A stretch of DNA of 64,000 nt from Hemiscyllium ocellatum (GCF_020745735.1 NC_083435.1:13795201-13859200); one strand, 5' to 3'. Counted from the first letter of the stretch, positions 6,461 to 50,170 are shown. Notes: generated by a model not told the origin, from the sequence alone. Translations and numbers: made by a program.

Positions 6461-6466
6461 TTTATT
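6461..6466 (-). terminator. Candidate polyadenylation signal of the Ig-V receptor gene
   Basis: AATAAA on minus, about 840 nt past the stop at 7306, followed by a GU/U-rich stretch (gtatgtattgattgttgaattttgcagaagttttttttg). Confidence 0.5.
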
Positions 6467-7305: not shown

Positions 7306-7434
7306 TTAGGTCTGTCTGCCATGGTTTGGCTCAACATGGATGTAGTCCGCATTCTCCATCTTGTAGTGCCCTTTGGGTTTTCTTTTCTTTCTCTTCTCCT
7401 CTTGACCAGAGCTCGAAGTTTTTCCCTCTCGGTG
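7306..7434 (-). CDS. Ig-V receptor, putative terminal coding exon: HREGKTSSSGQEEKRKKRKPKGHYKMENADYIHVEPNHGRQT*
   Basis: Acceptor ccgttgttttcaaag|CAC, phase 0, 42 codons plus TAA in unique sequence. Contains YKME and ADYIHV. Assignment to the receptor rests on phase and position. Confidence 0.55.
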   Translation of the reverse strand, partial: HREGKTSSSGQEEKRKKRKPKGHYKMENADYIHVEPNHGRQT

Positions 7435-7546
7435 CTTTGAAAACAACGGTCACAATGGTGAGATCGGTTTTTCCCAAGCCACCCAGCTGAAGGACAACTA
7501 CAGATGAGCGAGAAAACGCTAGCCATGACAAGTGAACAAAGTTTTT

Positions 7547-7972
7547 TTTAAAATCACACAACACCAGGTTATAGTCCGACACGTTTAATTGGAAGCACAC
7601 TCGCTTTCGGAGCAACGCTCCTTCATCAGGTGATTTTAGATTACATTACAGTGTGGAAACGGGCCCTTCGGCACAGCAAGTCCACACCGACCTGCAACCC
7701 ACCCATACCCCTACACCTACCCCTTACCCAACACTAGGGGCAATTTAGCATGGTCAATTCACCTGACCTGCACATCTTTGTGACTGTGCAGACACGGGAA
7801 GAATGTGCAAACAATCGCCTGAAGTGGGAGTTGTACCCGGGTCTCTGGCGCTGTGAGGCAGCAGTGCTAACCACTGTGCTACCGTGCCGCCCATAAGACT
7901 TTTGGACTATAACCTGGTGTTGTGTGATTTTTAACTTTGTACACCCCAGTCCAACACCGGTATCTCCAAATC
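7547..7972. mobile_element. Penelope-derived inverted-arm element (family B) interrupted by an HE1 SINE
   Basis: aaaatcacacaacaccaggttatagtcc...gctttcggagcaacgctccttcatcaggtg on the left; reverse-complement arm ggactataacctggtgttgtgtgatttt...ctccaaatcat on the right. Confidence 0.8.
7636..7892 (-). mobile_element. HE1-type SINE
   Basis: Minus strand begins gggcggcacggtagcacagtggttagcactgctgcctcacagcgccagagacccggg (tRNA-like head) and ends ...tttccacactgtaatgtaatctaa. Confidence 0.85.
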
Positions 7973-8635
7973 ATGACAGTGAAGCCCACATCCCACGAAT
8001 GAGATTGTGGCTGAATTTTCAAACCACTTTCCTGCCTTTTTCACCATTCTCCCCAATTTATTCGACAAGAGGGAGGAATAGCCAGAAAACCCCACTGTAG
8101 TTTCAACACAACGTTTTTTTTCTCTTAAGATGATATTAAACTTCACAGAGGGGCCGATCTGGAAGGATATGACGTAGAAGGACAGAGACTGCATCTCCAA
8201 TGTCCACCAGACAAAACTATGAATGAATGCCTCAGATCAGATATTTTTAAAATATCAAATGTGTGAAGGTCTAATCGAGACTGGAGGATTCACCCAGCTT
8301 GAGCTGGAGGGAGCATATTGAAAGACAATTCTCGGAATAAATTTTCCAGGAAGGCAATGAAAACGAACATAAACAAATTTTTAGGAGCAAAAAAATGCTG
8401 TTGGACTGATTTCAGAAGTACTGAATGTCTATTTAAGACTCAAGATAATATCTAGCCATTTGTGGGATTTTTGGTTGTATTAAAAAGTAAAGGGGGACAT
8501 TCTGTTCTGTAATTTAAAGGATAAGTTAACTGCAAAAAACGTCAATGTTTCATTTAGCTTGTTGAAATCAAAATTTGAAGACTTGAAATCCTGTGGTTTT
8601 CCTTTAAGTTGCTCACTGGGATGTTGTTTTACTTT

Positions 8636-8945
8636 GCACGGTGGCTCAGTATTTAGCACTGCTGACTCACAGAACTAGGGATTCAGGCTCGATTTTGGCG
8701 TCAGGTGACTGTCTGTGTGGAGATTACACATTCTCCCCATGGGTTTCCTATGCATGGTCCGGTTTCTTCCTACTGTCCAAAGATATGCTCAATTGTCTAG
8801 AGTGTCCAGGGATGCGTAGATTAGGTGCATTAGTCATGGAGAATATAGGGTTATGGGGATTGGATAGGGTGGTAGGTCTGCATGGGATGTTCTTTGGAAG
8901 GCTGGTATTGGCCGAATGGCCTCCTTTTGCACAGTAGGGATTCTA
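8636..8945 (+). mobile_element. Diverged HE1-type SINE
   Basis: gcacggtggctcagtatttagcactgctgactcacag head; ctgtctgtgtggagattacacattctcccc core. Confidence 0.75.
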
Positions 8946-9049
8946 GCTGGAATGAAAGCTATTAAGTTTTTGGAGAGGATATATGAGGAAATGGCATCAG
9001 GATTTCAGATAGATAGGATAGCCATTTTATTTACTTAAAGTAGAACATT

Positions 9050-9887
9050 TGAAGGAACGGGCAGATGGAGTTTAACTCAGATAAATGCGAGCTGTTGTAT
9101 TTTGTGAAAGTAAATCTTAGCAGGACTAATACACTGAATGGTAAGGTCCTAGGGAGTGTTGCTGAACAAAGAAACCTTGGAGTGCAGGTTCATAGCTCCT
9201 TGAAAGTGGAGTTGCAGGTAGATAGGATAGTGAAGAAGGCGTTTGGTATGCTTTCTTGTATTGGTCAGAGTATTGAGTACAGGAGTTGGGAGGTCATGTT
9301 GCGGCTGTACAGGACATTGGTTAGGCCACTGTTGGAATATTGTGTGCAATTCTGGTCTCCTTCCTATCGGAAAGATGTTGTGAAACTTGAAAATGTTCAG
9401 ACAATATTTACAAAGATGTTGCCAGGGTTGGAGGATGTGAGCTATAAGGAGAGGCTGAACAGGCTGAGGCTGTTTTCCCTGGAATGTCGGAGGCTGAGGG
9501 GTGACCTTAGAGAGGTTTACAAAATTATGAGGGGCATGGATATGATAAATAGACAAAGTCTTTTCCCTGGGGCTGGGGAGTCCAGAAGTAGAGGGCATAG
9601 GTTTAGGGTGAGAGGGGAAAGTTGTAAAAGAAACCTAAGGGGCAACCTTTTCACATAGAGGGTGGTACATGTGTGGAATGAGTTGCCAGAGGAAGTGGTG
9701 GAGGCTGGTACAATTGCAACATTTAAGAGGCATTTGGATGGGTATCTGAATAGGAAGGGTTTGGAGGGATATGGGCCGGGTGCTGGCAGGTGGGACTAGA
9801 TTGGGTTGGGATATCTGATCGGCATGAATGGGTTGGACTGAAGGGTCTGTTTCCATGCTGCACATCTCTATGACTCTATGATTCTAT
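9050..9887 (+). mobile_element. 5'-truncated CR1 LINE
   Basis: ORF 9065..9658 is nearly the same as ORF 1686..2495; ctctatgactctatgattct tail. Confidence 0.95.
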
Positions 9888-10164
9888 CATCAAACTATCC
9901 AAAATATTTTGATAAAGTAAATTTAAAGAAATTGTTTCACAAGGCTTGAAAGATGTCAATCAAAGGAAACAGGGTTTTAGATGCTGTGTCATATGATCGA
10001 AAGTGAATAATTAATAATCTTGTCCTAAAAATACTTTAGGGATGAGTGAAGACAATATGGTACCATTTACATGAGATTTGAATGTAAGATATTTCAATAT
10101 AAGACAAGGGTGCTAAATTTGACTAAAGAAAGTTATTAAGGCATGAAGCACAAAATATGTGCAG

Positions 10165-10314
10165 GCCAAGTGAATTGGTCATGCGAAATTGCCCATAGTG
10201 ATAGATGCATTAGTCAGAGGGAAATGGGACTGGGTGGTTACTCTTTGGAGGTCGGTGTGGACTTGTTGAGCCAAAGGGCCTGTTTCCACACTGTAGGGAA
10301 TCTAATCTAATCTT
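10165..10314 (+). mobile_element. HE1 SINE 3' half
   Basis: gtgaattggtcatgcgaaattgccc...gggcctgtttccacactgtagggaatctaatctaatct. Confidence 0.75.
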
Positions 10315-10559
10315 TAAAAAAAGGTGCTGAAGCAAATTGAGTAATTATATGCAAAGGCATAACTGTACATAGCAAAGGATAGTGTTTAAAGAAATTAGCG
10401 CGAGTTACGACAATTATACATTTCTTCAAGATGGAAAAATGCAAAAAGGATCCGTCAAACATGATCAACAAAGGAACTTCTGGATTGTATAAGATTAAAA
10501 ACAAAAGCCTCTTACGTTGTCAGAAATAACAATAAATCTGAGGATTGGAAGCTTTTTTA

Positions 10560-12330
10560 GAGGTCCGAGAAACTGACATGGAAAGGGAAGATAAAATATG
10601 AATGCAATCTAACAACTACAAAAAAAAGTGAAATAGTTTCTATAGATACTGGATCCTTACAGACAGTCAGGAGAAATGACAAAGAAGCTTTGTGATGATT
10701 ACTTTGTGTCTGTTTTCACTGAAGAACATTAAAGAAATCTCCTCGTACTAAAGGTCCAAATGGCTATGGAGAATGAAGGGCTAAAAGAAATTAGCATTAG
10801 TAAGAAGATTGTACTGGAGAAATTAATAGGCCTGGAAGCTGATGAATCTCCAAAACCTACCAGAGTGTCAGTGGTAGTAGTTTTAGAGATGGTGATAATC
10901 AGTGCGTTAATGATTATCTTCCAAAATTATACAGATTTGGCAAAACTTTCTGCAGTTTCGAAGATTCCTGAAGTATCAAGTGTGCCCGCTTTAGAAGGAG
11001 TCAGAGAGAAAGCAAGGAACTAAGGCCTGTTAACCTCATATCAATAGTAGAGAAAGAGCTTGAATCAATTAGAAAGAATGTCATATATAGATACTTGGAT
11101 AATAATGATCTGATCGGGTATAGCATGAAATGCAAGTAAGAAAATCACGTTTAATGAAATTGTTCGAGATGTTTGAAATATTATTTTTAAAAATAATAAA
11201 AAGGAGCCAATGAAGAAGATCTACTTAGATTTTCAGAAGCCTTTTGATAGTCATTTGAATTTCAGAAGATTTTTGATTTGTCCTGCACAGCCTTAATAAT
11301 GTGTTATCAGATAGATATCAGAGATTAGGAATACATAGGTAATTCACACATTGGCAGAAGTGTATCACAACAATTGGGCCCCAGCTGTTCACAATATTTA
11401 TCAATTATATTGAGTTGGGACCAACTGGAATATTTCCAAATTTGCAAATGATACAACACTAAGTGTAACTGTGTGTTGTGAAGTAGATGTAAAGCATTTG
11501 CAGGCTTGGTGAAGAGGCGAGAACATGGCAATTTTAGCACTTTGATAGGAGGAACCAATGTTCTTAAAAGAAGAAGAGCTTAGAAAGTATAAGTGCACAA
11601 AGAGATCATAATATACTTGGGATAAATTACTGAAGGCAAGCACATTAGTGCAGCAATCTATTAAGAAGGTTATTGGAATGTCTCCCTCATGGCAAAAAGG
11701 TTTGAGTACAGGAGTAGTGAAATCTTGCTTCAATTCTATGGGAGCTTGGTTAGACTTCACCTGGAGTATTGTCTGCAGTTTTAGTCTCTTCTTCTCAGAA
11801 AGGTATTATTGCTGTAGAGGGAGTGCAACAAGGATTCACAAGGCTTGTTCCTGGGGTTGTGGGACTGTTATATGAGGACAGATTGAGCAAACTGGCCTGT
11901 ATTCTCTAGTGTTTAAATAATGAGAAGTGATTTCATGAAATCTGGATTGATAGCCAAATCTGATAGATAGACGATACTCAAACAGATAGACAATACAGAT
12001 GCAGGAAAGATATTTCCTATGGTTGTAGAATCTAGAATAAGAGGATATTATGAATAAAGAAGAAGAATGTAAATGAGGTCCAAAATGATGAGATTTGTTT
12101 CTGACTCAGAGAGCTGTCAATCTTTGGGACTCACTATGACAGGGGAGCTATGAAAGCTCGGTCATTGTGGATGTTTATGGTAGAGGTTCATGGGTTTCTC
12201 ATTACCGGTTGTTTTGTAGGGTTAAGGGGGTGGGTGGGTAAAAGGCATTGAAGTTTTTGAATGGCCATGATCATATGGAATGGCAGGGCAGATTCAGGCT
12301 GAATGGCCAACTTCTGTTGTAATGCACCCA
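10560..12330 (+). mobile_element. Old, heavily decayed CR1 LINE ORF2 remnant
   Basis: ORF 10760..11023 (ISKKIVLEKLIGLEADESP) and scattered motifs (tacttagattttcagaagccttttgatag = YLDFQKPFD; ttagacttcacctggagtattgt). Confidence 0.75.
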
Positions 12331-12372
12331 TTACATTTTAAAGATAGAATGTTCCAAAAGGATCCTACTTAC

Positions 12373-12407
12373 AGCGTGCTTCCCTTTCTTATTTGATGGG
12401 GCAGACT
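12373..12407 (-). CDS. Ig-V receptor, candidate cytoplasmic exon B (35 nt): (E)SAPSNKKGKHA
   Basis: Acceptor ttacttctttccaatag|AG and donor GCT|gtaagt; phase 1 to 0 fits between the 19-nt exon and the terminal exon. Confidence 0.5.
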
Positions 12408-12499
12408 CTATTGGAAAGAAGTAACAATGGGTTAGCAAATTTACATATGAAATGCAGAAAGTCACAAATATAACAGCCCATCCATATCTTTACCCAACC

Positions 12500-13194
12500 T
12501 AATCTGGGAACTTGTATGGCTAAATTCTTCAGCCTTCAAATAAAATTCATTAATTACTACATCTTTCATATTTGCAAAGTATGTACTTAGAACAATGTTC
12601 ATTATTGGTCTTTTGAAAGTGTCATGCTATTTACTGTCAAGTAGCACAGTGTAATCATAACCTACTAACTGACATTGTTGCAAACAGAAATAGGAAACAA
12701 AATCTATATCGATTTGTATACATTATCATACATGTGAACTCAAATGTGGGATTGCTTAAAATTGATCCAGAATTTTCTGCAAATTGAAGTTTATTTTGGG
12801 GTGTGGATAACATTAGGACATAGTGTACCTGTAAGGCATCTAATTTTCTCTGCATAGTTTTCGGTTAATGAAATGTAAATTTACAATGACTAAAACTGGG
12901 AAAATGCAAAGATAAGAGTATTTCTCCACTGCAACTAACACAATGATACTTTTTTTCTAGCACAACTCCTCTTTGGCTCCATTTTAAACGAATAATTATT
13001 CTGCCGCTTTCAGATGTTGCTGAGCATTTTCAGCATTGTTAATTTTTTTAGCAATGTGAGAACACAAAATAGTCATACTTCCCCTCAAGTCTTATATGTC
13101 ATGTCATCTGATCCCAAATTCTTTTACCTCCTTGGTTTGGTAGCACTTAACATCCTCCCTACCAAAAGAAAAAAAAAACAGCACCAATCCTTGT
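12500..13194. repeat. Local direct duplication, copy 1 (partner at 16726-17636)
   Basis: Colinear with copy 2 from aatctg..aacttg..ggctaaattcttcagccttcaaataaaattcattaattactacat to catcctccctaccaaaa...ccaatccttgt. Confidence 0.9.
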
Positions 13195-16100
13195 GGTACT
13201 CCACTGGTCACAGCCCTCCAATCTGAAAAACAACCCTCCGCCACCATCCTCTCCTTCTACCTTTGAGTCAGTTCTGTATCCAAATGGCAAGTTCCCCCTG
13301 TATTCCATGAAATCTAACCTTGCTAATCAGTCTCCCATGGGGAACCTTGCCGAACATCTTACTGAAGTCCATATAGATCACATCTACTGCTCTGCCCTCA
13401 TCAACCCTCTTTGTTACTTCTTCAAAAAACTCAATCAAGTTTGTGAGACATGATTCCCCACACACAAGCCATGTTAACTATCCCTATTCAGTCATTGCCT
13501 TTCCAAATACATGTACATCCTGTCCCTCAGGATTCCCTCCAACAACATGCCCCCCCCCCCCCCCCCGCCACTGAGGTCCGGCTCCCAGTCTACATTTCCC
13601 TGGCTTGTCTTTACCTTCTTAAACAGTGGCACCACGTTTGCCAACCTCCAGTCTTCCAGCATCTCACCCGTGACTATTGATGGTACAAATATTTCAGCAA
13701 AAGGCCCAGCAATCACTTCTCTAGCTTCCCACAGAGTTCTCGGGTACACCTGGTCGGGTCCTGGGGATTTACCAGCTTTTAACCATTTCAAGACATCCAG
13801 CACTTCCTCCTCTGTAATCTGGAGATTATGCAAGATGTTACCATCTATTTCCCTATAGCATATATCTTCCATATCCTTTTCCACAGTAAATACTGATGCA
13901 AAATATTCATTTATTATCTCCCCCATTGTTTGCAGCTCCACACAAAGGCCGCCTTGCTGATCTTTGAGGGGCCCTATTCTCTCCCTAGTTACCTTTTTGT
14001 CCTTAATATATTTGTGAAAGCCTTTTGGATTCTCCTTAATTCTATTTGCCAAAGCTATCTCATGTCCCCTTTTTGCCCTCCTGATTTCCCTCTTAAGTAT
14101 ACCCCTACTTCCTTTATAGTCTTCTAAGGATTCACTCGATGTATCCTGTCTATACCTTACATATGCTTGCTTCTTTTTCTTAACCAAACTCTCAATTTCT
14201 TTAGTCATCCAGCATTCACTAAACCTACCAGCCTTCCCTTTCACCCTGACAGGAATATACTTTCTCTGGATTCTTGTTATCTCATTTCTGAAGGCTTCCC
14301 ATTTTCCAGCCATCCCTTTACCTGCGATCATCTGCCTCCAATCAGCTTTCGAAAGTTCTTGCCTAATACCGTCAAAATTGACTTTTCTCCAATATAGAAC
14401 TTCAACTTTTAGATCTGGTCTATCCTTTTCCATCACTATTTTAAAATGAATAGAATTATGATCTCAAAGTGCTCCCCACTGACACCTCAGTCACTTGCTC
14501 TGCCTCATTTCCCAAGAGTAGGTCAAGTTTTGCACTTCTCTGGTAGGTGTATCCACATATTGAATCAGAAAATTGTCTTGTGCAAACTTAAGAAATTCCT
14601 CTCCATCTAAACCTTTAAAACCATGGCAGTCCCAGTCGATGTTTGGAAAGATAAAATCCCCTACTGTAACTACCCTATTATTCTTACCGAGATCTCCTTA
14701 CAAGTTTGTTTCTCAATTTCCCTCTGACTATTATGGGGTCTATAATACAATCCCAATAAGATGATCATCCCTTCCTTATTTCTCAGTTCCACCCAAATAA
14801 CTTCTCTGGATGTATTTCTGGGAATATCCTCCCTCAGCATAGCTGTAATGCTATCCATTTTCAAAATGCCACTCCCCCTCCTCTCTTGCCTCCCTTTCTA
14901 TCCTTTCCGTAGTATTTGTATCCCAGAACATTAAGCTACCAGTCCTCCACATTCCTGAGCCATGTTTCTGTAATTGCTATGATATCCCAGTCCCATGTTC
15001 CTAACCATGCCCTGAGTTCATCTGCCTTCCCTGTCAGGCCCCTTGCATTGAAATAAATGCATTTTAATTTATTAGTCCTACCTTGTCCCTGCCTGCCCTG
15101 ACTGTTTGACTCACTTCTGTTCTCAACTGTACCAGTCTCAGATTTATCTCTTTCCTCACTATCTCCCTGGGTCCCACACTCCCTTCCCCCACCATACTAG
15201 TTTAAATCCTCCTGAGGAACTCTAGCAAATCTCCCAGTCAGTATATTAGTCCCCTTCCAATTTAGGTGCAATCCATCATTCTTGTACAGGTCACTTCTAC
15301 CCCAAAAGAGATTCCAATGATCCAAAAATGTGAATCCTTCTCCTCTACACCAGCTCCTCAGCCATGCATTCATCTGCTCTATCCACCTATTCCTGCCCTC
15401 ACTAGCTCGTAGCACTGGGAGTAATCCAGATAATACTGCCCTTGAGGAACTCCTTTTTAAATTTCTGCATAACTCTCTGTAATCTCCCTTCAGAGTCTCA
15501 ACCTTTTCCCTTCCTATGTCGTTGGTTCCAATATGGACAATGACCTCCTGCTGGTACCTCTCCCCTGTGAGAACATTCTGCACCCTCTCTGAGACATGCT
15601 TGATCCTGGCACCAGGGAAATAACATACCAATCTGCTTTTTCTCTGCTGGCCACAGAATCATCTGTCTCTACCTCGGACTACAGAATCCATAGCACAACT
15701 GATCTCTTGGAAGCTGACATGCCCCTCGATCCATTAGAGCCAGTCTCAATACCAGAAGCTTGGCTGTTCGTGCTACATTCCCCTGAGAATCCATCACCCC
15801 CTACATTTTCCAAAACAGCATACCTGTTTGAAATGGGTTTATCCACAAAAGACTCCTGCCCTAGTTGCCTACCTCTCTTACCCTTCCTGGAGTTAACCGA
15901 TCTATGTGACTGTATCTGAGACTTTCCCCCTTCCTTTAACTGCAATCCATCACATACTGTTGCTGTTGCAAATTCATCATCCCTTCTAACTGTCTCTCCA
16001 ACCGATCCATTCAATCTGATAAGATTTGCTTCCAACAGATATAATCCACAGTAACCCTTAAACTCTCTTCAAACTCCCACATTTGGCAAGAAGATTATAT

Positions 16101-16700
16101 CATTGCCAAGGCCATTTTTGCTCCTTCACAATCTACAGACCCAGAAAATAACACCGTCTTATTCCTCTGCAAAACACTGCACCAGGTTAAATTAATAGTT
16201 ATGCTTATATTTTAAGTTTAGTCAAGAGATTTATCTCCAAATACATATAATCAAGAAAGAACCCACTGTACTCACTACTGCAGCATTTCTATTGGACACA
16301 CTTAAAACAACAATTAACTTATCTGATTCTTTGTTGTGAACTTTGCCCAAACAGTTTTCTCCAAGATTAGTTGTGAAATTCACTGTTTGTTAATTTTCCT
16401 AGATGCACTCCGATGTCCAGCGATACATGAATTCAAAAACAGCAAAGGCAGTAACTGTGCAGGATCTCTCCCTCTCTCCTGCACTATCCTCACCATGTGC
16501 TTCCTTTGTCTGCTCTTCTCTCTTCTAAAACTGCTGTTGTTTTGACTTTTTTGACAAAGTTCCAAAACAATGCAACAGCATATAAAGCAGTAATTGCTGC
16601 TCCTGGAATTCGAAGAAATCACCTCCAGCACCTAAAATACCTCAAAAACGGAGCAGCCAGAAATTTTTCCCGTCCTCCATCTTCAGCAGATTCTGGATAC
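13195..16700 (-). mobile_element. CR1 LINE with ORF1 (SGNH esterase) and the APE/RT N-terminal part of ORF2, 3'-truncated
   Basis: 15197..15631 (VIVHIGTND...FLDHWNLFW...DGLHLN); 14670..14864 (EVIWVELRNK...LGLYYRP); 13492..14436 (K-SPGPDQVYPR, DWRLANVVPLFKK); 13268..13465 (CLTNLIEFFEEVT...VIYMDFSK). Confidence 0.93.
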
Positions 16701-16725
16701 AATTCCTTTGTCAATAATGTGAGTA

Positions 16726-17636: not shown

Positions 17637-17884
17637 TTGAGTTTATATATTCAGTCTCTTTCTGAGATATTAAAATTGAGTCTGCTCTGACAGCACTTTT
17701 GTACTGTACATTCCAGGTCATACAATTAGCTACAGTTCAACAAAAATCTCTTCATCGCATCCTCAGTCATTTGTCTGAGATTTGTGTCTTCTAGCTGCCG
17801 GCAGATGTGAGAAGTGTAACATCCTCTTGTTCATACAAGGACTGGAAAGTTTGAGCTAAAGGGAGAGGTTGAATACACTGGGCG

Positions 17885-18275
17885 ATATTTCCCTGGAGTA
17901 TGAAATGCTGAAGGATGGTCTCATAGAGGTTTATAAAGTCATGAGGGGCATGGATATGGTGAGTAGTCAACCTCTTTTTTTTCCCAGTGTAAGGGAGTCC
18001 AAAATTAGAGGGCATAGGTTTAAAGTGAGAGGAGGAAGATTTAAAAGGGCAATGTTTTCACACACAGGATGGTGAGTGTATGGAGTGAGCTGCCAGAGGA
18101 GGTGGTAGAAGCTCATACAATGACAACATTTAAAAGGCATCTGGATGGGCACATGAATAGACAGGGTTTAGAAGGATATGGCCAAATGCTGGCAATGGAA
18201 CTAGATTAATTTAGGATATCTGGTCAGCATGGATGAGTTGGGTTGAAGGGTTTGTTTCTGCCTGTATAACTCAGT
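17885..18275 (+). mobile_element. CR1 3' fragment
   Basis: ORF 17869..18075 (GLIEVYKVMRGMD...GHRFKVRG). Confidence 0.85.
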
Positions 18276-18871
18276 GATTCGATGCCCTTCCTACCGGTGA
18301 GGTCCCTATCCTTTCTTTACTGAATCAGTTGACTGAAATAGTGTATCTGGCCTGAATTTTAAAACATATATCTAGAGAAGATCAGTCAGCATTCAGATTC
18401 TGAATGGAATTCTTTTGTAAACAATGTGAGCAAATATCAAATGTGTATTAGGGTGGATGCAGTGAGGGTGTTGGGAAGAGGGGAAGGAATATAAATATAT
18501 TGATATCAACAGGGTTAAAAGGGAAACTAAGGAGAAACTTGATACATCTCAAGAGGAAGAGTGCAATATTTACAAAAATGACAGAAGTGGATCAATACGA
18601 TTGTTGGTGCCTAACTAAACTTGGAAGTTATTGTAACAGATGTAACAGCTAAACAAAGAAAAATTCCAATCCTGTAATGCTGAGAGCGTGTTCAAGAGAA
18701 AGGTTCATGTCTGAGTGAACTTAGCCTTGACAAAGTCAAGGACAGGTCGCTTACGTATCTAAGAAGGTAAAATGCTCTGAAATAGTGAGCAAGAGTGGGC
18801 CAAAGGGAGGTTTCATTCAAGTCGATTTGTAATCTGACAAGTTTCCCTCCTGCAAGTTAGAAATCAGTTAC

Positions 18872-18906
18872 CTGTTGACTTTTCGGTGATGTATGCAACA
18901 AACTGC
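18872..18906 (-). CDS. Ig-V receptor, candidate alternative cytoplasmic exon C (35 nt): (G)SLLHTSPKSQQ
   Basis: Acceptor gtgttttcatctcccacag|GC and donor CAG|gtaact; same length and phase (1 to 0) as exon B. Confidence 0.35.
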
Positions 18907-18961
18907 CTGTGGGAGATGAAAACACATGATTAACAAAATGTATTTGTCAATGGAATACGTT

Positions 18962-21385
18962 TACAATAGACAATAGACAATAGGTGCAGGAGTAGGCCAT
19001 TCTGCCCTTTGAGCCTGCACCACCATTCAATATGATCATGGCTGATCATCCTTAATCAGTATCCTGTTCCTGCCTTACCTTCATAACCCTTGATTCCACA
19101 ATCCTTGAGAGCTCTATCCAACTCTTTCTTAAATGAATCCAGAGACTGGGGCTCCACTGCCCTCTGGGGCAGAGCATTCCACACAGCCACCACTCTCTGG
19201 GTGAAGAAGTTTCTCCTCATCTCTGTCCTAAAAGGTCTACCCCATATTTTTAAGCTGTGTCCTCTGGTTCGGCACTCACCCATCAGTAGAAACATGCTTC
19301 CTGCCTCCAGTGTGTCCAATCCTTTAATAATCTTATGTCTCAATCAGATCCCCTCTCAGTCTTCTAAACTCAAGGGTATACAAGCCCAGTCACTCCAGTC
19401 TTTCAGTGTAAGGTAATCCCACCATTCCAGGAATTGACTTTGTGAACCTATGCTGCACTCCCTCAATAGCCAGAATGTCTTTCCTCAAATTTGGATACCA
19501 GAACTGCACACAGTACTCCAGGTGTGGTCTCACCGGGGTCCTGTACAGCTGCAGAAGAACCTCTTTGCTTCTATACTCAATCCCTCTTGTTATGAAGGCC
19601 AGCATGCTATTAGCCTTCTTCACTACCTGCTGTACCTGCATGCTTGCCTTCATTGACTGGTGTACAAGAACACCCAGATCTCTGTACTGCCCCTTTACCT
19701 AAATTGATTCCATTTAGGTAGTAATCTGCCTTCCTGTTCTTGCCACCAAAGTGGATAACCATACATTTATCCATATTAAACTGCATCTGCCATGCATCTG
19801 ACCACTCACCTAACCTGTCCAGGTCACCCTGTAATCTCCTAACATCCTCATCACATTTCACCCTGCCACCCAGCTTGGTATCATCAGCAAATTTGCTAAT
19901 GTTACTAATACCATCTTCTATATCATTAACATATATTGTAGAAAGATTCGGTCCCAGTACTGATTCCTGCGGTACCCCACTGGTCACTGCCTGCCATTCC
20001 GAAATGGAGTCATTTATCACTACTCTTTGTTTCCTATCAGCCAACCAACTTTCAATCCAAGTTAATACTTTGCCCCCAATACCATGTGCCCTAATTTTGC
20101 TCACTAACCTCCTATGTGGGACTTTAAAAAAAGCTTTCTGAAAGTCCAGGTACACTTCATCTACTGGATCTCCCTCGTCCATCTTCAGGGTTACATCCTC
20201 AAAACATTCCAGATGATTAGTCAAGCATGATTTCCCCTTCATAAATCCATGCTGACTCTGACCTATCCTGTTACTACTATCCAGATGTGTCGTAATTTCA
20301 TCCTTTATAATAGACTCCAGCATCTTTCCCACCACTGAGGTCAGACTAACTGGTCTATAATTTCCTGCTTTCTCTCTCCAACCTTTCTTAAAAAGTGGTA
20401 CAAAATTAGCCACCCTCCAATCCGCAGGAACTGATCCCAAATCTATCAAACTCTGGAAAATAATCACCAACGCATCCATGATTTCTCGAGCCACTCCTTC
20501 AGTACCCTGGGTTGTAGACCATCAGGTCCCGGGGACTTATCAGCCTTCAGACCTAACAGTCTCTCCAACACCAATTCCTGGCAAATATAAATTCCCTTCA
20601 GTTCAGGTCCTCCAGCCACTGTTATCTTGGAGATTTGCATGTGTCTTCCCCAGTGAACACAGATCTGAAGTACCAATTCAATTCTTCTGCCATTTCTTTG
20701 CTCCCCATAATATATTCCCCTGTTTCTATCTTCAAGGGCCCAATTTTAGTCTTAACCATTTTTTTGCCTTTCACATATCTAAAATAACTTTTACTATCCA
20801 CCTTTATATTATTGGCCAGTTTACCTTCATACCTCACTTTTTTCTCTGCGTATTTCCTTCTTAGTAATCCTCTGTTCTTTAAAAGCTTCCCAGTCCTCCA
20901 TTTTCCCACTTATCTTTGGTATGTCATACTTTTTCTCTCTTAACTTTATATGTTTCTTAACTTCCCTCATCAGCCACGGCCACCCATGCCTCCTCCTAGG
21001 ATCTTTCTTCCTTTTTGGAATGAACTGATCCTGCAACTTCTGCATTATACACCGAAATATCCGCCATTGTTCTTCCACTGTCATCCCTGCTAGGGCATTG
21101 CACCATTGAACTTTGGCCAGCTCCTCCCTCATAGCTCCATAGTTCCCTTTATTCAATAGAAATATTGCCACTTCTGATTGTACCCTCTCGCTCTCAAATT
21201 GCAGATTGAAGCCTACCTACATGTTGAAATCCCCCATAACAACTGTTGTAACATCTTTGGACAGGCCAATTTCAGCTCCTGATTTAACTTACATCCGACA
21301 TCCAGACTACTGTTTGGGGGCCTGTAGATAACTCCCAAGAGGGTCTTTTTACCCTTAGTGTTTCTCAGCTCTATCCACACTGACT
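18962..21385 (-). mobile_element. CR1 LINE ORF2 (APE C-terminal part, RT, 3' tail), frameshifted
   Basis: 19610..20494 (YRPVSLTSVVGKMLE, YLDFQKAF, SGVPQ-SVLGP, SKFADDTKLGG) and 19390..19653; (CTATTGT)n tail at 18962-18982. Confidence 0.95.
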
Positions 21386-21647
21386 CTACACCCACTCAAA
21401 TAACAATCAGTTACCTTCCCGACCGGCTTTGCGCTCTGCCTTCACTTCCGCCCAGCTCCCGCCGCTCTCTGATGCGAAAAGACCTTTGGCGTCGAGGTAA
21501 GTTCTTAAATAACAATCACTTGCCTTCCCGTTGTTACATCTCATTGCAAGTCAGAATCAGGGCCACAGAGACCGAGAGGAATGGTTCACTTACTGATCAG
21601 AGAGAAAACAGAGGACTCGCGCAGACTAAACTAGTATATGAACTCAC

Positions 21648-21666
21648 CTCTGAAGAGCAATGCAAG
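21648..21666 (-). CDS. Ig-V receptor, candidate 19-nt cytoplasmic exon: LALLFR
   Basis: Strong acceptor ctctttttatttctttgcag|CTT and donor AGAG|gtgagt; phase 0 to 1. Confidence 0.5.
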
Positions 21667-22012
21667 CTGCAAAGAAATAAAAAGAGAATCACAACCAGGT
21701 TCAATGTGAATATAGGATGAGTATTTGAATGGCAGTGTCAATGCTCGGCGTGTATACCTATAACTTCCTGTTGGAAATGTAACTCCCAATAGACATGAAC
21801 GCGTGATAGCAGCAAGATTGTTATTGTACTCCTCCTCATACATAGCTCGCTCCAATTCCATGGTTCCTCCCAATTCACAACAATAAGCATTAAACGCCAT
21901 GACAGTGATTCAAATTTATTTCACTTTTGCAGCTACTGCGTAAAATGGTCACTATCAGACCGTATCTCTCACACACGATCGGCGTTGATTGTACTTTATA
22001 CGCTGTACGCAT

Positions 22013-22110
22013 TGGCCTCTGGTGGCACAATGGTAGTATCCCTAATTCTGAGCTAGAAGACAGGCGTTCGAATCCCACTTGCTCCATTCGTGCCTTATAA
22101 CGCGTTTGAG
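22013..22110 (+). mobile_element. tRNA-derived SINE head
   Basis: ggcctctggtggcacaatggtagtatccc (A box) ... gttcgaatcccacttgctcca (B box). The acceptor stem is poor, and related copies occur at 3421 and 58180, so this is not a real tRNA. Confidence 0.6.
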
Positions 22111-22202
22111 TAGCGTGGTATGCTACTCCCACACTGATGGCTAAATATGCTATATGGCCCACTTTTAAGAGTCCTCGTTGCACCGGTGATAATGTCCCTG
22201 TT

Positions 22203-22575
22203 CAAGACCCACCTGCGCTTTTCCAAACTCGCTATACCCGTGCGACCATTTAGTGTTAGAAGATTGCTGTTCATTGTACAATCCGAGGAGCTCAAAGATT
22301 GAGGAAATTGTAGTGAAGGGTCTAAAGGCTGGGGTATATGAACAGCAGAAGAGCAACTTTTGCAACAAGAGAAATTGAATCCACCAGTACATTGATCTTG
22401 GAAATTACGGACTGGATTTCTACGCGGTCATGGGACGGTCTGGTTTCAGCATTACCGATTTCAAAAACAAAAGGTGAAAATGTGGCACGCCGGCTCAAAG
22501 CACAAGATTTCACAGCAATAACCGATTAAATGGTTTCAGCAAAAATATGGTGGCATCTTCCTGTCTGGAAAGTAA
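22203..22575 (+). pseudogene. RPL11: Processed (intronless) ribosomal protein L11/uL5 pseudogene, 5'-truncated
   Basis: Broken frames give FSK..RYT, KIAVHCTIRGA, EEIVVKGLK, YIDLGNYGLDFYAVMGRSGFSITD, KHKIS and KWFQQKYGGIFLSGK*. These are colinear with RPL11 (KIAVHCTVRGA, YGLDFYVVLGRPGFSIAD, RWFQQKYDGIILPGK*), with stops, frameshifts and no introns. Confidence 0.9.
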
Positions 22576-22621
22576 CTTCAAGAGCGCATGAAAAAGCAGT
22601 TAAATCAATTTTTGATTTGCA

Positions 22622-23110
22622 GATGACGGTGCTGGATTGGGGTGAACAACGTTTAAAAATTACACAACGTCAGGTTATAGGATAGCAGGTTTAGATTAGA
22701 TTACTCACAGTGTGGAAACAGGCCCTTCGGCCCAACAAGTCCACACCGACCCGCCGAAGTGCAACCCACTCATACCCCTACATTTACCCCTTACCTAACA
22801 CTACGGGCAATTTAGCTTGGCCAATTCACCTGACCCGCACATCTTTGGACTGTGGGAGGAAACCGGAGCACCCGGAGGAAACCCACGCAGACACGGGGAG
22901 AACGTGCAAACTCCACACAGTCTGACGGGTCTCAGAACCCGGGTCTCAGGCGCTGTGAGGCAGCAGTGCTAACCACTGTGCCACCGTGCCGCCCACGAAA
23001 GCACTAGCTTTCGGACCGCTGCTCCTTCATCAGGTGGTTGTGACCTAGCGAAAGGCAGTGCTTCCAAATAAACCTGTTGGACTATAACCTGGTGTTAGGT
23101 GATTTTAAAC
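22622..23110. mobile_element. Family B inverted-arm element with a nested HE1 SINE (22691-22994, minus)
   Basis: Left arm ...aaaaattacacaacgtcaggttatagg, then a full HE1, then cactagctttcggaccgctgctccttcatcaggtgg (hammerhead on minus, 23002-23036) and the reverse arm. Confidence 0.82.
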
Positions 23111-23322
23111 TTAAATCAATTTGTAGCAGTAAAAATAATGTTCTGAACAGATTGACCAGAAATTATCTATGCTTCTGACGATAAAGATTTTTTTTAAACT
23201 CCCCTCGGCATGTGTGTGTGTGTTACTGGCAAAGCAACGTTTATTGCCCATACCCAGTTGACTTTGGAGACGGGATAACGGTCTATCGACGTGAACCGCT
23301 CCTGTTAGATGTGATCACCTAC

Positions 23323-23360
23323 TTTTGCGGTGGTCTGGGAGGGCGTGCAGAAAGTTTCCT
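23323..23360 (-). CDS. Ig-V receptor, first cytoplasmic exon (38 nt): (E)ETFCTPSQTTAK
   Basis: Acceptor ccttgcactttccag|AG and donor AAA|gtaggt; phase 1 to 0; 102-nt intron from the TM exon. Confidence 0.65.
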
Positions 23361-23462
23361 CTGGAAAGTGCAAGGATATAACAGCAGGCGGGTATTTGAA
23401 GTTTCTGTAGGACCGGGGGTCATGCCTAGTCCAAACAATAGTAAGTGGAGTAAATGAAATAC

Positions 23463-23585
23463 CTTTATTTCGTTGCCTGAGCTTCACAGACACTGCAATG
23501 AGTGCAATGCCAAGCACCGACAGCACTGCTGCGGCCGCCCCGATATGTATGATATTGGGGGAGCATTGTTGTTCTTGTGAAGCAC
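23463..23585 (-). CDS. Ig-V receptor, stalk/transmembrane exon: (R)ASQEQQCSPNIIHIGAAAAVLSVLGIALIAVSVKLRQRNK
   Basis: Acceptor accattgcag|GT and donor AAAG|gtattt; phase 1-1. About 23 hydrophobic residues followed by a basic stop-transfer KLRQRNK. Confidence 0.85.
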
Positions 23586-23842
23586 CTGCAATGGTCATGG
23601 GAACAAAGGTTAGACAAGCGTCCTCAGCAAATGGCTGCCAATTCTTTCCGAGAACTTGCCGTTTCACGTTCAGCAATGGCGATCTCAACATTGGACTTTC
23701 TTAACGCCTTGACGCCGATTTCCTCTAACAGTCGCGGACGCACACTCAACGACAAACGCTCTCACAGCCCCTTTCTCCCAGGCTGCGTGCTCATCATCAC
23801 AAAGTCACATACACGAACTCACAGAGACACACCAGACGCATA

Positions 23843-24058
23843 GTTGAAAATCGCACAACACCGGGTTATAGTCCAACGGGTTTATTTGATAGCACTAGCT
23901 TTTGCATCGATGCTCCTTCATCAGGTAGTTGACAACCTCCTGATGAAGGAGCAGCGCTCCGAAAGCTAACGCTTCCAAATAAACGTGATTGTCTATAACC
24001 TGGTGTTGTGTGATTTTCAACTTTGTCCACCCCAGTCCAACACCATCTCCTCCAAATC
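23843..24058. mobile_element. Family B inverted-arm element in the V-TM intron
   Basis: gctccttcatcagg-tagttgacaacct-cctgatgaaggagcagcgctccgaaagcta centre with reverse-complementary arms. Confidence 0.85.
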
Positions 24059-24303
24059 ACATATACATAGACGTTGACACAGAGACGTACGCTATCATGC
24101 ATACACGCTCAAATACACACGATCCCAGAGTTAGGCAGATTCAGTTCTCCTGAGGACACTGAGGTGTATGTGCGTCTGTTTGGGAACGAATATGTGTGTG
24201 ACACACAGACACACACACACACACACACACACACATCCAGACATAGACGCACACAAATAGACAGTAACACACTCGAGCGCTCAAAGTTGTACAAAATTCT
24301 TAC

Positions 24304-24624
24304 GCCTCACGATAAGACTTGCTCCTGCGCCCTTAAACTGTCTGTTGAGTTGCTCCACGATGCAATAATACGTCCCAGAATCGCATACTGAGAGGTTGCT
24401 GATCCGCACAGAAATAAACAGCTCATTGTTAGAATATTCACTGGTTTCAGTTACTCTCTGGTGGTACTTTGTGATGACTTGGTGTATTTTTAGATCATCT
24501 TTCAACCATTTGTAAGATTTGGCTCCGGGGTGATCAAAGGTACAATTCAGTGTCGCGGTCTGACCTTCCACAAACTCGGCTGAAAGAGGCGACTGCCGTA
24601 CCTCTTCGTTACTTGAGTAAACTG
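24304..24624 (-). CDS. Ig-V receptor, VJ-type V-domain exon (107 codons)
   Basis: Acceptor gttttattcctaatag|CAG (NAGNAG) and donor AGGC|gtaaga; phase 1-1. Translation VYSSNEEVRQSPLSAEFVEGQTATLNC...YKWLK...ISNLSVCDSGTYYC...FKGAGASLIVR shows the B-strand Cys, C-strand Trp, DxGxYYC and a J-like GxG. Confidence 0.93.
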
Positions 24625-24919
24625 CTATTAGGAATAAAACTTTGCTTCAGCCATCGGTCGTTTCGTTTTTGTGCTTGGGTCACCCACTCCTCACCCCTCA
24701 ACCCAACCTCCGCCACCAACCCCCCACCCCCCCCCTCCCCCACCCCCCAACCCATCCCTCATGTATTAGCTAACAGCTGGATTTGGGGTTACTGAACGCG
24801 TCTCTTCCTGTCCTTATCTTCGCCTTAGCTTCGTCCCCCGATTCAAAAGGGCCACCTCCCCTTCTCCCATCCATTTCACCCACCCACATCCACCCACCCC
24901 CGACCCATGCCCACAACCC

Positions 24920-26400
24920 AGCCCTTTGCACAGTGCAGGAACAAAACCAGAAGTTGTTGGATAGAGCAGGGCCGGTCTGGCAGCATCTGTGGAGAGAAAC
25001 CAGAGTTCTCGTTTCGGATCCCTTGACCCTGCCTCAAGAACAGCGCCACAAACCGCATTCAGAAGGTCGTCAGCCGCTCCCTCCAGCGAGGTGTCACCAC
25101 CAGGCACATATTCCCCTCCACTCTTTTTGCCCGCCATCCGCAGGGACACTCAGATCCACTCTTCCATCATTCCCAAGACCTCCTCCACCCACCCCACTGC
25201 AAGTTCCCCTACAACCGCCGAACCTGCCCATTTATAGTACCTCCACCCCCCCCCCCCCTCAGTATCCAAAGGCCCAAACAGACCTTCCAGGTGAAGTAGT
25301 GCTTTACCTGCACTTCACTCAATCTCGTTGACTGCACTCGCTGCTCACAATGTGGTCTCCTCTTCCCTGGGGCAACGAAGCGAAGACTGGGTGACCGCAA
25401 CGCAAAACCTAAGTTCTTCCCACAAAAAAAACAATTCCCTAAACTTCCAGTCGCCTGCTACTTTAACACGTGGCTCTGTTCCCTGGCCAAGGTCTCTGCC
25501 TCAGGCTTCCTGCAGCGCAAGCCGTAAGAACAGCACCTCATTTTCCACTTGGAAATCCTGCAGCCATCCGGACTCAATATCGAGTTCAATAGCTTTTGGA
25601 TCTGAACTCCCCCCATGTCTACCCCACACACCGGGCTTGTGATCACATAGCACCCCTCAAACTTATAAGTGTATGTGTGGAGGGGGGGCAGGGGGTGTTA
25701 TGAGTGTCTGTGAGAGAGTGTGTATATGTGTGTGAGTGTAAACGGGTGTAGCTCTGTGACAGGGCGCGTGTGGGTATGTTAAGTGTGAGCGTATGAGAGA
25801 AGGTCTGCGTGAGTGTGTGTGTGCGTGTGTGTCCGTCTGTGTGTGTGTGTGTCCGTCTGTGTGTGTGTGTCCGTCTGTGTGTGCGTCCGTCTATGTGTGT
25901 CCGTCTGTGTGTGCCCATCTGTGTGTGTCTGTCTGCCTGTGTGTCCGTCTGTGTGTGAGTCCGTCTGTGTGTGTGTGTCCGCCTGTGTGTCCGTCTGTCT
26001 GTGTGTGCATGTTCGACTGTGTGTGCGTCCGTCTGTGTGTGTCCGTCTGTGTGTGCCCATCTGTGAGTGTGTCCGTCTGTGTGTATGTCCATCTGTGTGT
26101 GTGTGTGTGTGTGTGTATGTAGACAGTGCAATGATCTCAACCAGTACCTTGGATTCATTACACACTACGTGAACCCATTGCACTACACACATGCCGTCAG
26201 ACACTACCTAGTGTTGGCCACTAACTGTCTCCAGTAACAGCTATTCACCTTCCTAACCAGATCGTCAGCAACTCCTTTGTCTCTCCAAATGTTCTTCCCT
26301 TTTGAAACATAAGCAGTCCTGAGGAAAAGTCGACTGTGATGTTTCTGCACAGATGCCGCCAGACCTGCTGAGTTGTGTGAGCAACGTTTGTTTTGGTGCC
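24920..26400 (+). mobile_element. Decayed Penelope-like element fragment (GIY-YIG region and 3' end) with an inverted family C terminus
   Basis: ggcccaaacagaccttccaggtgaag...tgctttacctgcac...tgcactcgctgctcacaatgtggtctcctc is homologous to the endonuclease region at 52650-52850. The 3' end cagatgccgccagacctgctgag lies at about 26350. Confidence 0.75.
25660..26120. repeat. Compound (GT)n microsatellite with a recurring CCGTCT interruption
   Basis: Units such as gtgtgtgtccgtct repeated many times; this explains the CV- and HT-rich spurious ORFs. Confidence 0.95.
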
Positions 26401-26589
26401 TTTGGAATCTCGGTTTCAAGAGTTCCCGAGGTGGTTGGAGACCCTGAACACGGATGGGGGTGCGTTTGGAACTCCGTAAATCATCCAACAACACCCCCAT
26501 CCCCGTCATTTCCCACCGACCCCATTCCCCTCCTCCCACTCACTCCCCAATCCTCCTCAGGAATGCACGGGGGGACATTGAAATCTTAC

Positions 26590-26644
26590 CTGTGGTCAAG
26601 AAGAAAGACATAAGGACCAAGGCAGGGACAGATCGCGAATTCAT
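26590..26644 (-). CDS. Ig-V receptor, leader exon: MNSRSVPALVLMSFFLTT(A)
   Basis: gaccATG start (an in-frame ATG also lies at 26648-26650), hydrophobic core, donor ACAG|gtaaga. Phase 1 joins the V exon to give ...LTTAVYS. Confidence 0.85.
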
Positions 26645-26778
26645 GGTCATTTCCCCACAGCGGCGAGCTGCTCTGGTGAGGGTGTAGGCTGATCGCCCGA
26701 CTCAATGTTTGCTTGACCGGCCTGAGCTCGCAACATCACCGTATTAGGCAGCTTGGGCTCGCGCCAAGTTTAGGAGGG

Positions 26779-47364: not shown

Positions 47365-47461
47365 CCAAGCATCCCCATGAGCCATGCTCTGATATAAATA
47401 AAACCCCATCCTTTCCCCCTTCTCCCTCTCTCTCTCTCTTGCTGTCTGAAGGAGGACTTAC

Positions 47462-50128: not shown

Positions 50129-50170
50129 CAATGTCTCCCTGGTCATTGAGGTCAAACTCCATGTATTTCT
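50129..50170 (-). CDS. AIF1: AIF1 exon (42 nt): (Q)KYMEFDLNDQGDI
   Basis: Acceptor cattgcttttcag and donor gtaagt; EF-hand loop start matching KYMEFDLNGNGDI. Confidence 0.96.

Follow-up and report, generated by a model that had tools for sequence, protein, structure and literature searches.

NKp30 (NCR3) is among the few NK-cell receptors that can be traced across jawed vertebrates and, as a non-rearranging VJ gene, has been used in the argument for a proto-MHC origin of antigen receptors. Human NCR3 and AIF1 adjoin in the MHC class III region, and AIF1L sits in the human 9q34 paralogous region. In the literature, shark NCR3/NKp30 is regarded as a non-rearranging, MHC-linked VJ gene (PMC12227049; PMC10751288), with eight NCR3-family genes reported in the nurse shark (PMC12227049). 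The human receptor couples to CD3zeta via a transmembrane (TM) charge interaction, and its tail is varied by alternative splicing, giving isoforms a, b, and c (PMC12272517). Here we analysed a 64-kb stretch of epaulette shark (Hemiscyllium ocellatum) DNA, referred to as the window, with positions counted from its first letter. We consider it probable that a gene on its minus strand, LOC132832667, is the epaulette shark orthologue of NKp30, with an uncharged TM segment and a product that most likely acts via its own cytoplasmic region. A preliminary description had offered the receptor as a candidate; the gene is already a RefSeq model, however, and the shark NCR3 family reportedly already has a dedicated paper, that of Kinlein et al. 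2021, Immunogenetics 73:333. The locus is thus annotated and its family described, and no new gene or principle is claimed.

Comparison with described receptors

The window protein is 63% identical to GenBank QTT61902.1, [quoted passage not shown] (238 aa), and shares with this nurse shark protein its length class, VJ domain, extra Cys, stalk Cys, uncharged TM segment, and an identical KACIALQRQFVAYITEKS segment. The tail context is also shared (ENADYVH in nurse shark), although the residue at +3 from the Tyr differs, nurse shark having Cys and the window protein Val. Human NKp30 resembles the shark protein in having a single V-type Ig domain to which the J-like strand is joined, a short stalk, and one TM segment, and the two match at the level of fold. 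They differ in that the TM charge of the human receptor pairs with CD3zeta (PMC12272517), whereas the shark protein is without such a residue, and in that the human tail is unrelated in sequence to the shark tail, identity being 17-21%. Members of the CD28/CTLA-4 family and TMIGD2 are likewise type I receptors that combine one V domain and a stalk Cys with tyrosine motifs in the tail; in contrast to CD28/CTLA-4, the FG loop of the shark protein reads EQLNRQ, there is no MYPPPY-type motif and no YxxM, and the stalk Cys is not kept in rays. The pairing of a stalk Cys for covalent homodimerization with a proline-rich FG-loop motif is therefore not found here, and no sequence-level relationship of the shark protein to CD28, CTLA-4, or TMIGD2 was detected.

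Gene structure and transcript isoforms

The minus strand of the window contains, from 26650 to 7306, seven coding exons with GT-AG borders that join in frame when spliced (Table 1). Counted from the ATG at 26650 (MTM...), the predicted product is a type I membrane protein of 240 aa, all of which match RefSeq XP_060706732.1 ("uncharacterized protein LOC132832667 isoform X1", Hemiscyllium ocellatum), which uses the same exons. This confirms the phase-consistent exon chain of about 239 aa given in the preliminary description (238 aa from the Met chosen there, the MNS start at 26644), including a leader exon with a phase-1 GTAAG donor. The gene span of the RefSeq record, 20,108 bp, corresponds to 27413-7306+1, and the coding exons occupy 19.3 kb of DNA rich in repeats. 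The acceptor of the V exon (aatAG/CA) yields ...TTAVYS/SNEEVRQSPLS..., and all four tail exons (4-7) have AG/GT borders and compatible phases. The 19-nt exon 4 has the borders tttgcAG/CTTGCA...CAGAG/GTGAGT, its peptide ACIALQR was matched at 100% by tblastn, and the assembly through it is in frame. The RefSeq model is itself a prediction, and its database name carries no function.

Table 1. Features of LOC132832667 and its AIF1-family neighbour in the 64-kb window.
Feature	Position	Strand	Description
Alternative first coding exon	27389..27413	-	MAYAARRE, then G completed by exon 3; N-terminus at 27413, GTGAGT donor
Exon 1	26590..26650	-	Start codon and most of signal peptide (MTMNSRSVPALVLMSFFLTT); phase-1 donor GTAAG after 26590
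Exon 2	24304..24624	-	321 nt, phase 1/1; end of signal peptide (AVYS) and whole VJ-type V domain
Exon 3	23463..23585	-	123 nt, phase 1/1; stalk with Cys (ASQEQQCSP), TM, basic stop-transfer KLRQRNK
Exon 4	21648..21666	-	19-nt microexon, ACIALQ(R); start of conserved juxtamembrane inner segment
Exon 5	18872..18906	-	35 nt, (R)QFVAYITEKST
Exon 6	12373..12407	-	35 nt, ESAPSNKKGKHA; frame of last exon shifts if exon 6 is skipped
Exon 7, coding part	7306..7434	-	HREGKTSSSGQEEKRKKRKPKGHYKMENADYIHVEPNHGRQT then stop; polybasic stretch and C-terminal N-x-x-Y-I-H-V
Probable 3' UTR	6445..7305	-	Only AATAAA/ATTAAA hexamer at 6466; putative 3' end; coverage by run X1 to at least 6800
AIF1-family (Iba1/Iba2) gene	47458..59380	-	Exons GGKAFGILKAQQDDRLESINK ~59380, EKYMEFDLNDQGDI ~50162, EF-hand exon 47622..47458

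Alternative forms of the transcript are also represented among the RefSeq models. Isoform X2 skips the V exon, and isoform X3 starts with the alternative first exon and joins it directly to the stalk/TM exon, resulting in a V-less product. We infer that the out-of-frame small exons (19 and 35 nt) allow tail swapping by alternative splicing. A five-exon model of 222 aa, in which the TM exon ran directly into the 35-nt exon at 18906 (...NKGSLLHTSPKSQQ followed by HREG...), was dropped, as two further microexons are shown by RefSeq isoforms of LOC132832667 and by orthologues. The same direct splice matches predicted basking-shark isoforms X3/X4, and skipping of exon 4 may occur in nature.

A sequencing run of 150 Mb, probably of RNA (run X1), was compared with the window by word shares. 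The run contains 0.15 of the words in 23250-26700, a stretch of which exons 1-3 make up about 0.14, and 0.90 of those in 6800-7500, where 0.90 is expected if the last exon begins at 7434. These shares fit the spliced exons of LOC132832667 and lend them indirect support.

Variable domain and family identity

The V domain of exon 2 matches the Pfam V-set family (E 7.9e-11, above the cut-off) and is modelled by AlphaFold with a pLDDT of 85-94. Its landmarks are C48/W60/C108, an extra Cys101 within NLSVCDSGTYYC, the sequons NCT and NLS, and a J-like FKGAGASLIV strand; the germline FKGAG strand, both sequons, and the extra Cys had been described beforehand, and each is present in the sequence. In alignments with rearranged TCR alpha VJ, exon 2 is covered over its whole length and the J-like strand falls on FGxGT. 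V and J-like G strand are encoded together by one germline exon, as is characteristic of NKp30/NCR3. No second V exon was found in a six-frame scan of the window, leaving exon 2 as the sole V-like exon there.

In a tree of 18 elasmobranchs, with one gene per species found, the topology follows the species tree, and the window gene groups with nurse shark NCR3 inside the orectolobiform clade. About 20 kb upstream, the same strand carries an AIF1-family gene, in an arrangement that recalls the human NCR3-AIF1 pair. Sequence identity, species-congruent tree, and AIF1-family neighbour together support the NKp30-family membership put forward in the preliminary description, as well as the reading of the window gene as a predicted 1:1 orthologue of the nurse shark NCR3 entry. 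This assignment draws on the name given to the nurse shark protein and on linkage; similarity of the V domain to that of mammalian NKp30 forms no part of its basis. A PDB search with the 47458-47622 exon of the neighbour returned Iba2 at 4.5e-18 and AIF1 at 5.6e-18, the next family following at 5e-08, and the scores for AIF1 and AIF1L are equal. Neither an MHC gene nor a B7H6-like gene was seen in the 64-kb window, and the long ORFs outside LOC132832667 and the AIF1-family gene are mostly transposon-like, with no other evident gene.

These data also bear on whether the gene is a true NKp30 orthologue at all, as it could instead belong to an elasmobranch-specific VJ-type lineage whose name NCR3 reflects mere resemblance and whose AIF1-family neighbour is there by chance, possibly in a region paralogous to the MHC. 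Profile searches at E <= 0.1 found the family in elasmobranchs only, and PDB sequence searches with the V domain and with the family profile ranked generic VJ-type V domains (TCR alpha, Ig light chain, VNAR, and SIRP) above NKp30, which was absent from the best 60 matches; the equal scores of the neighbour for AIF1 and AIF1L point the same way. Despite this, we regard such a lineage as quite unlikely. Specialists deposited the nurse shark entry as NCR3, the published view is of an MHC-linked VJ NCR3 gene in sharks (PMC12227049; PMC10751288), and the architecture is the same, namely a single VJ exon followed by a short stalk and a TM segment. Moreover, among the top fold matches, identity and hit-normalised TM-score are highest for mammalian NCR3 entries.

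Foldseek searches against PDB and AFDB Swiss-Prot gave no discrimination among single-V receptors. In AFDB Swiss-Prot, NCR3 entries rank 14-28 (E ~3e-9 to 7e-9, 17-21% identity), level with VISTA, CD8 beta, CD7, BTLA, TIGIT, and PD-1, and with TMIGD2 and the CD28 family in the same tier. A representative search was dominated by multi-Ig proteins and provided four useful single-V relatives.

Stalk and transmembrane segment

The preliminary description of a short stalk with Cys (QQCSP) and a TM segment lacking Arg, Lys, and Asp holds for exon 3, and Glu is lacking as well. The TM segment comprises 23-24 residues without K/R/D/E, with a Kyte-Doolittle peak at residues 138-161. Charged residues are absent from the TM segment in 16 of 17 aligned orthologues, the window protein included, the exception being Heptranchias with an Arg at the outer TM edge. 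The basic residue by which mammalian NKp30 pairs with CD3zeta/FcRgamma is accordingly found neither here nor in 15 of the 16 other aligned orthologues. Because the TM segment is without a basic residue, pairing with ITAM adaptors in the manner of the mammalian receptor is probably absent, and the shark receptor would most likely act via its own cytoplasmic region instead.

Outside the membrane core, orectolobiform, Scyliorhinus, and Heterodontus orthologues keep a His at the outer TM boundary; other orthologues have Y, L, or F there, and in Heptranchias the Arg lies one residue earlier. Cys101 does not vary across the family. The stalk Cys occurs in sharks and, among the six ray and skate models, in that of the skate Leucoraja alone; the other five lack it, leaving Cys101 unpaired there. 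An uncharged TM segment does not strictly preclude adaptor pairing, and the window protein is among those with a His at the outer edge.

Signalling through a partner chain could in principle be achieved despite the uncharged TM segment, via the outer-edge His, polar TM contacts, or a disulfide formed by Cys101 or the stalk Cys. The retention of the His in several lineages, the Arg of Heptranchias, and an invariant Cys101 that lacks its potential stalk partner in most rays and skates would all be in keeping with such an arrangement. We nonetheless judge it very unlikely, given that no K or R lies within the membrane core and that the His itself is variable among the remaining orthologues.

Cytoplasmic tail

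The cytoplasmic tail has 79 aa, with ...ENADYIHV... near its end. It runs HYKMENADYIHVEP as previously described, except that it does not terminate at VEP, after which NHGRQT and the stop follow. Mean identity between the window protein and its shark and ray orthologues is 84% in the inner juxtamembrane segment versus 51% in the V domain, and AlphaFold models the TM and inner juxtamembrane segments as one continuous helix (residues 139-185). On the reading that we prefer, in which signalling by the shark receptor's own tail is plausible, this very conserved inner helix, KACIALQRQFVAYITEKST, would carry a Cys that could be palmitoylated, the polybasic stretch KRKKRKPK could lie on the inner leaflet, and the C-terminal Tyr, within the shark-wide N-x-x-Y-[V/I]-H, could be phosphorylated or act as a sorting signal. 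The output, put forward as non-activating in the preliminary description, may be inhibitory, co-stimulatory, or chiefly one of trafficking.

The three tail tyrosines are found in FVAYITE (+3 E), KGHYKME (-2 G, +3 E), and NADYIHV (-2 A). When compared to the canonical ITIM, [S/I/V/L]-x-Y-x-x-[I/V/L], none of the three sites in the window protein is canonical, and the C-terminal site is canonical in no orthologue aligned. The C-terminal Tyr is kept in every full-length shark model, none of the six ray and skate models has it, and the inner juxtamembrane Tyr is Phe in Heptranchias; hence, no single Tyr is kept across all elasmobranchs. N-x-x-Y-[V/I]-H occurs in 10 of 11 full-length shark models, Mustelus having CPDYVHD. 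Nine shark models, the window protein among them, have A at -2, the two Scyliorhinus species have D, and Mustelus has P. At +3, sharks show V, I, F, C, or D: nurse shark carries C, Mustelus carries D, and F occurs in whale shark, zebra shark, and Heptranchias. Since -2 and +3 vary in this way, the conserved core is N-x-x-Y-[V/I]-H and not an ITIM.

This pattern weakens the earlier suggestion that ADYIHV is ITIM-like and, with it, the case for an inhibitory receptor in which the phosphorylated C-terminal site recruits SHP-1/SHP-2. Y-I-H-V does offer a hydrophobic +1 and a Val at +3, the C-terminal Tyr persists throughout the full-length shark models, and an uncharged TM segment is typical of inhibitory members in paired receptor families. 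Selection, however, appears to have acted on a core other than the ITIM, with A/D/P at -2 and C/F/D at +3 in several sharks, and rays and skates do without the Tyr, which together make an inhibitory ITIM unlikely in our view.

Alternatively, the tail Tyr may serve mainly in sorting or docking, either as a Y-x-x-hydrophobic endocytosis motif (cf. YVKM of CTLA-4) or as an N-x-x-Y site for PTB adaptors, implying trafficking control or a CD28-like co-receptor. YIHV, YVHV, YVHI, and YVHF all fit Y-x-x-hydrophobic, Asn at -3 is kept in 10 of the 11 shark models with the C-terminal Tyr, and the fold search places CD28-family and related single-V receptors (TMIGD2, PD-1, BTLA, TIGIT, and VISTA) level with NCR3. 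The hydrophobic +3 is nevertheless broken in nurse shark (YVHC) and Mustelus (YVHD), and N-x-x-Y here is without the Pro, such that a role chiefly in sorting or docking is doubtful as well.

Implications for NKp30 signalling

The tyrosine modules would differ between lineages: that of sharks is the C-terminal N-x-x-Y-[V/I]-H, and that of rays would be an ITSM-like S-T-E-Y-[L/M]-x-[I/V/M]. We tentatively raise the possibility that elasmobranch NKp30 is a self-signalling CD28-like receptor, combining the core helix with lineage-specific tyrosine modules and a tail switched by splicing of the 19/35-nt microexons, and that ITAM coupling through a TM Arg arose later. If this were the case, coupling to ITAM adaptors via the TM Arg would be a derived state of NKp30. 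More generally, by adding a further shark species with a clean gene model, an AIF1-family neighbour, and an uncharged TM segment, the locus provides a data point on ancestral receptor signalling. Part of the self-signalling, CD28-like interpretation may already be contained in Kinlein et al. 2021.

Gene structure, transcript support and isoforms

The receptor gene, LOC132832667, lies on the minus strand of the window and comprises seven coding exons that join into 723 nt, in frame and with AG/GT borders throughout. The 240 residues that it encodes match XP_060706732.1, the RefSeq isoform X1 of this gene, without a difference, which bears out the preliminary description of a receptor of about 239 residues. 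The leader (ATG-ACC-ATG-AAT...) starts at 26650 and is followed by a phase-1 GTAAG donor after 26590. In a six-frame scan, the V-exon frame stays open upstream through ...AVYSSNEEVRQSPLSAEFVEGQ, while the acceptor at 24624 (aatAG/CA) yields exactly the leader end proposed earlier, TTAVYS, together with a normal A strand. Our family search also returned a 121-residue Hemiscyllium ocellatum protein, isoform X3 of the same gene, with an exact match to the transmembrane (TM) and tail exons of the window. This isoform reveals two extra tail pieces, ACIALQ(R) and ESAPSNKKGKHA, and a splice directly from the TM exon to exon 5 was dropped once they were seen. The RefSeq gene span of 20,108 bp (27413-7306+1) is accounted for if the gene begins with the alternative first exon used by isoform X3 and closes with the stop codon.

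Exons and other features of the receptor locus (window positions)
Feature	Position	Strand	Remark
V ORF	24281-24571	-	ORF list
Stalk/TM ORF	inside 23305-23691	-	ORF list
Tail ORF	7306-7446	-	ORF list
Alternative first exon	27389-27413	-	V-less isoform; 760 bp upstream of leader
V exon (exon 2)	24624-24304	-	phase 1/1
Stalk/TM exon (exon 3)	23585-23463	-	phase 1/1
Microexon (exon 4)	21666-21648	-	19 nt; encodes ACIALQ(R); good splice sites
35-nt exon (exon 5)	18906-18872	-	located by tblastn with distant homologues
Microexon (exon 6)	12407-12373	-	35 nt; encodes ESAPSNKKGKHA; good splice sites
AIF1-family (Iba1/Iba2) gene	47458-59380	-	upstream of receptor; three exons: ~59380, ~50162, 47622-47458
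Retroelement-like ORFs	13495-14463, 15200-15658, 19613-20521, 20830-21216, 52266-54245	-	
Retroelement-like ORFs	1671-2492, 9053-9655	+	

ORFs resembling retroelement reverse transcriptases and endonucleases fill the introns and flanks of the gene, which accounts for the spread of so short a coding sequence over 19 kb. Long, imperfect (CA)n-rich simple-repeat tracts are also present just downstream of the V exon (24131-24290) and in intron 1 (25646-26207), and appear as TH/CV repeats in the translations of the ORF list.

Transcript support is indirect and was assessed as the share of sampled words found in a 150-Mb sequencing run of the same organism, which we guess to be RNA. The run contains 0.15 of the words sampled from 23250-26700, where exons 1-3 would give about 0.14, and 0.90 of the words of 6800-7500, where the share of 31-mers lying wholly downstream of the acceptor at 7434 is likewise 0.90 (605/671). 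Both shares are consistent with a spliced transcript whose 3' UTR extends beyond 6800; a multi-gigabase genome would not be covered in this manner by 150 Mb of DNA reads. The only polyadenylation hexamer is located at 6466.

The last exon is apparently read in three different frames among homologue models from different species, and sequence alone could therefore not settle the frame of the tail. Since the 19-nt and 35-nt exons do not preserve the frame, omission of any one alters how the last exon is read, which explains the three frames. In the window, skipping of exon 6 would give a tyrosine-free tail ending ...EKSTAPRGKNFELWSRGEEKEKKTQRALQDGECGLHPC-stop, a form that RefSeq lists for Chiloscyllium plagiosum (P0167). 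Other last-exon frames occur in isoforms predicted for Pristis, Heterodontus, and Cetorhinus (among P0013, P0153, P0015, and P0162). These predicted tail-swapping isoforms recall the a, b, and c tail isoforms of human NKp30. RefSeq also predicts two V-less isoforms (P0164 and P0169): one begins at the alternative first exon, while in the second the leader is joined directly to the stalk/TM exon. Omission of the V exon yields precisely the sequence of isoform X2.

Probable membership in the NKp30 family

As a type I membrane protein, the receptor carries one VJ domain and a TM segment that lacks charged residues. The V exon matched the Pfam V-set family (E 7.9e-11). The strand at its end, FKGAGASLIV, lines up with the FGxGTxLxV of rearranged T-cell receptor (TCR) alpha chains, which marks the domain as a germline-joined VJ domain. 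The features listed in the preliminary description (two sequons, an extra Cys before DSGTYYC, a QQCSP stalk, and the absence of charge from the TM) were all found in the sequence.

When the PDB was searched by sequence, with either the V domain or the family profile as query, the leading matches were TCR alpha, Ig light chains, VNAR, and SIRP, and NKp30 was absent from the top 60 matches with either query. The AlphaFold model is confident for the V domain (pLDDT 85-94), and in a fold search of Swiss-Prot with this model, NCR3 entries from primates and rat took ranks 14-28. The NCR3 entries have the top identities (17-21%) and the top hit-normalised TM-scores in that list, and equal fold-search scores were obtained by VISTA, VSTM4, CD8 beta, CD7, BTLA, TIGIT, TMIGD2, PD-1, and CD79b. 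Because these fold and sequence matches do not discriminate, membership in the NKp30 family rests on a chain of orthology and on linkage.

In the family search, each shark, ray, or skate species yielded a single protein, and at E <= 0.1 no match lay outside elasmobranchs. The window protein is 63% identical to nurse-shark QTT61902.1, whose deposited name is "natural cytotoxicity triggering receptor 3". In a maximum-likelihood tree of 18 proteins, rays split from sharks and an orectolobiform clade was recovered, with the window gene beside two Chiloscyllium genes and next to those of nurse, whale, and zebra shark. Such a topology is expected of 1:1 orthologues.

According to previous studies, shark NCR3/NKp30 is a VJ gene that does not rearrange and is linked to the MHC, and eight NCR3 genes are cited for the nurse shark (PMC12227049; PMC10751288). 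In the 64-kb window we found no MHC gene proper. The upstream neighbour of the receptor belongs to the AIF1 family: in the PDB, its exon at 47622-47458 matched Iba2 and AIF1 (both ~5e-18) better than any other EF-hand protein by ten orders of magnitude, and since AIF1 and AIF1L score equally, the assignment holds at the level of the AIF1 family only. In humans, NCR3 adjoins AIF1 within MHC class III. Together, this linkage and the orthology to nurse-shark NCR3 uphold the earlier assignment to the NKp30 family as far as it could be checked. The original observation is correct and was carefully made; RefSeq already contains a model of the gene, and the orthologue from nurse shark has been named and published. 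Kinlein et al. have reportedly dedicated a paper to shark NCR3.

The extra Cys before DSGTYYC (Cys101) is invariant in all 17 sequences of the family alignment. The stalk Cys (Cys133) is missing in five ray models and kept in the skate Leucoraja, such that Cys101 would be unpaired in those rays. Cys101 may form an interchain bond.

The transmembrane segment and candidate signalling elements of the tail

Of the 16 further orthologues in the alignment, 15 likewise combine one VJ domain with an uncharged TM. In the sevengill shark Heptranchias perlo (P0158), the outer TM boundary (SISIRFIG) carries an Arg at a position occupied in most sharks by His (in many of them), Tyr, Leu, or Phe, and the membrane-proximal tyrosine of the tail is replaced by Phe. 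Conservation across sharks and rays is highest in the cytoplasmic segment next to the membrane, KLRQRNKACIALQRQFVAYITEKST (residues 162-186, exons 3-5), with a mean identity of 84% to the window protein, compared to 51% for the V domain, 63% for the TM, 53% for the mid-tail, and 34% for the final 16 residues. In the AlphaFold model, the TM and the segment that follows form one helix (residues 139-185). This suggests that KLRQRNKACIALQRQFVAYITEKST has either a conserved partner inside the cell or a structural role.

Mammalian NKp30 is described as signalling through an Arg to CD3zeta, a route made unlikely here by a TM that carries no charge. The receptor probably uses its own tail, in which candidate elements include a Cys just inside the membrane (for palmitoylation), a polybasic KRKKRKPK stretch (for binding to the inner leaflet), and the C-terminal tyrosine, one of three tail tyrosines in the epaulette shark. 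On sequence grounds, tyrosine-based signalling is plausible, and its output could be inhibitory, co-stimulatory, or one of sorting via Y-x-x-hydrophobic or N-x-x-Y. The preliminary description had proposed signalling through an ITIM-like tail (ADYIHV), a reading that is reasonable and unproven, with the ITIM as its weak element.

The "ITIM-like" label does not hold up on conservation. Among 11 full-length shark models, the C-terminal site reads NADYIHV, NADYVHV (two species), NADYVHC, NADYVHF, NAGYVHF, NANYVHI, NDDYVHV, NDEYVHV, NAEYVHF, or CPDYVHD, variants that indicate a conserved core of N-x-x-Y-[V/I]-H in which positions -2 and +3 are free to vary. This tyrosine is absent from all six ray and skate models. 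Five of these six, all but Leucoraja, have S-T-E-Y-[L/M]-x-[I/V/M] after EKS (Pristis, two Mobula, Hemitrygon, and Hypanus; P0013, P0160, P0161, P0163, and P0170). The ITSM pattern T-x-Y-x-x-[V/I] is fitted by three of the five (Pristis, Hemitrygon, and Mobula hypostoma), while Mobula birostris and Hypanus have a Met at +3.
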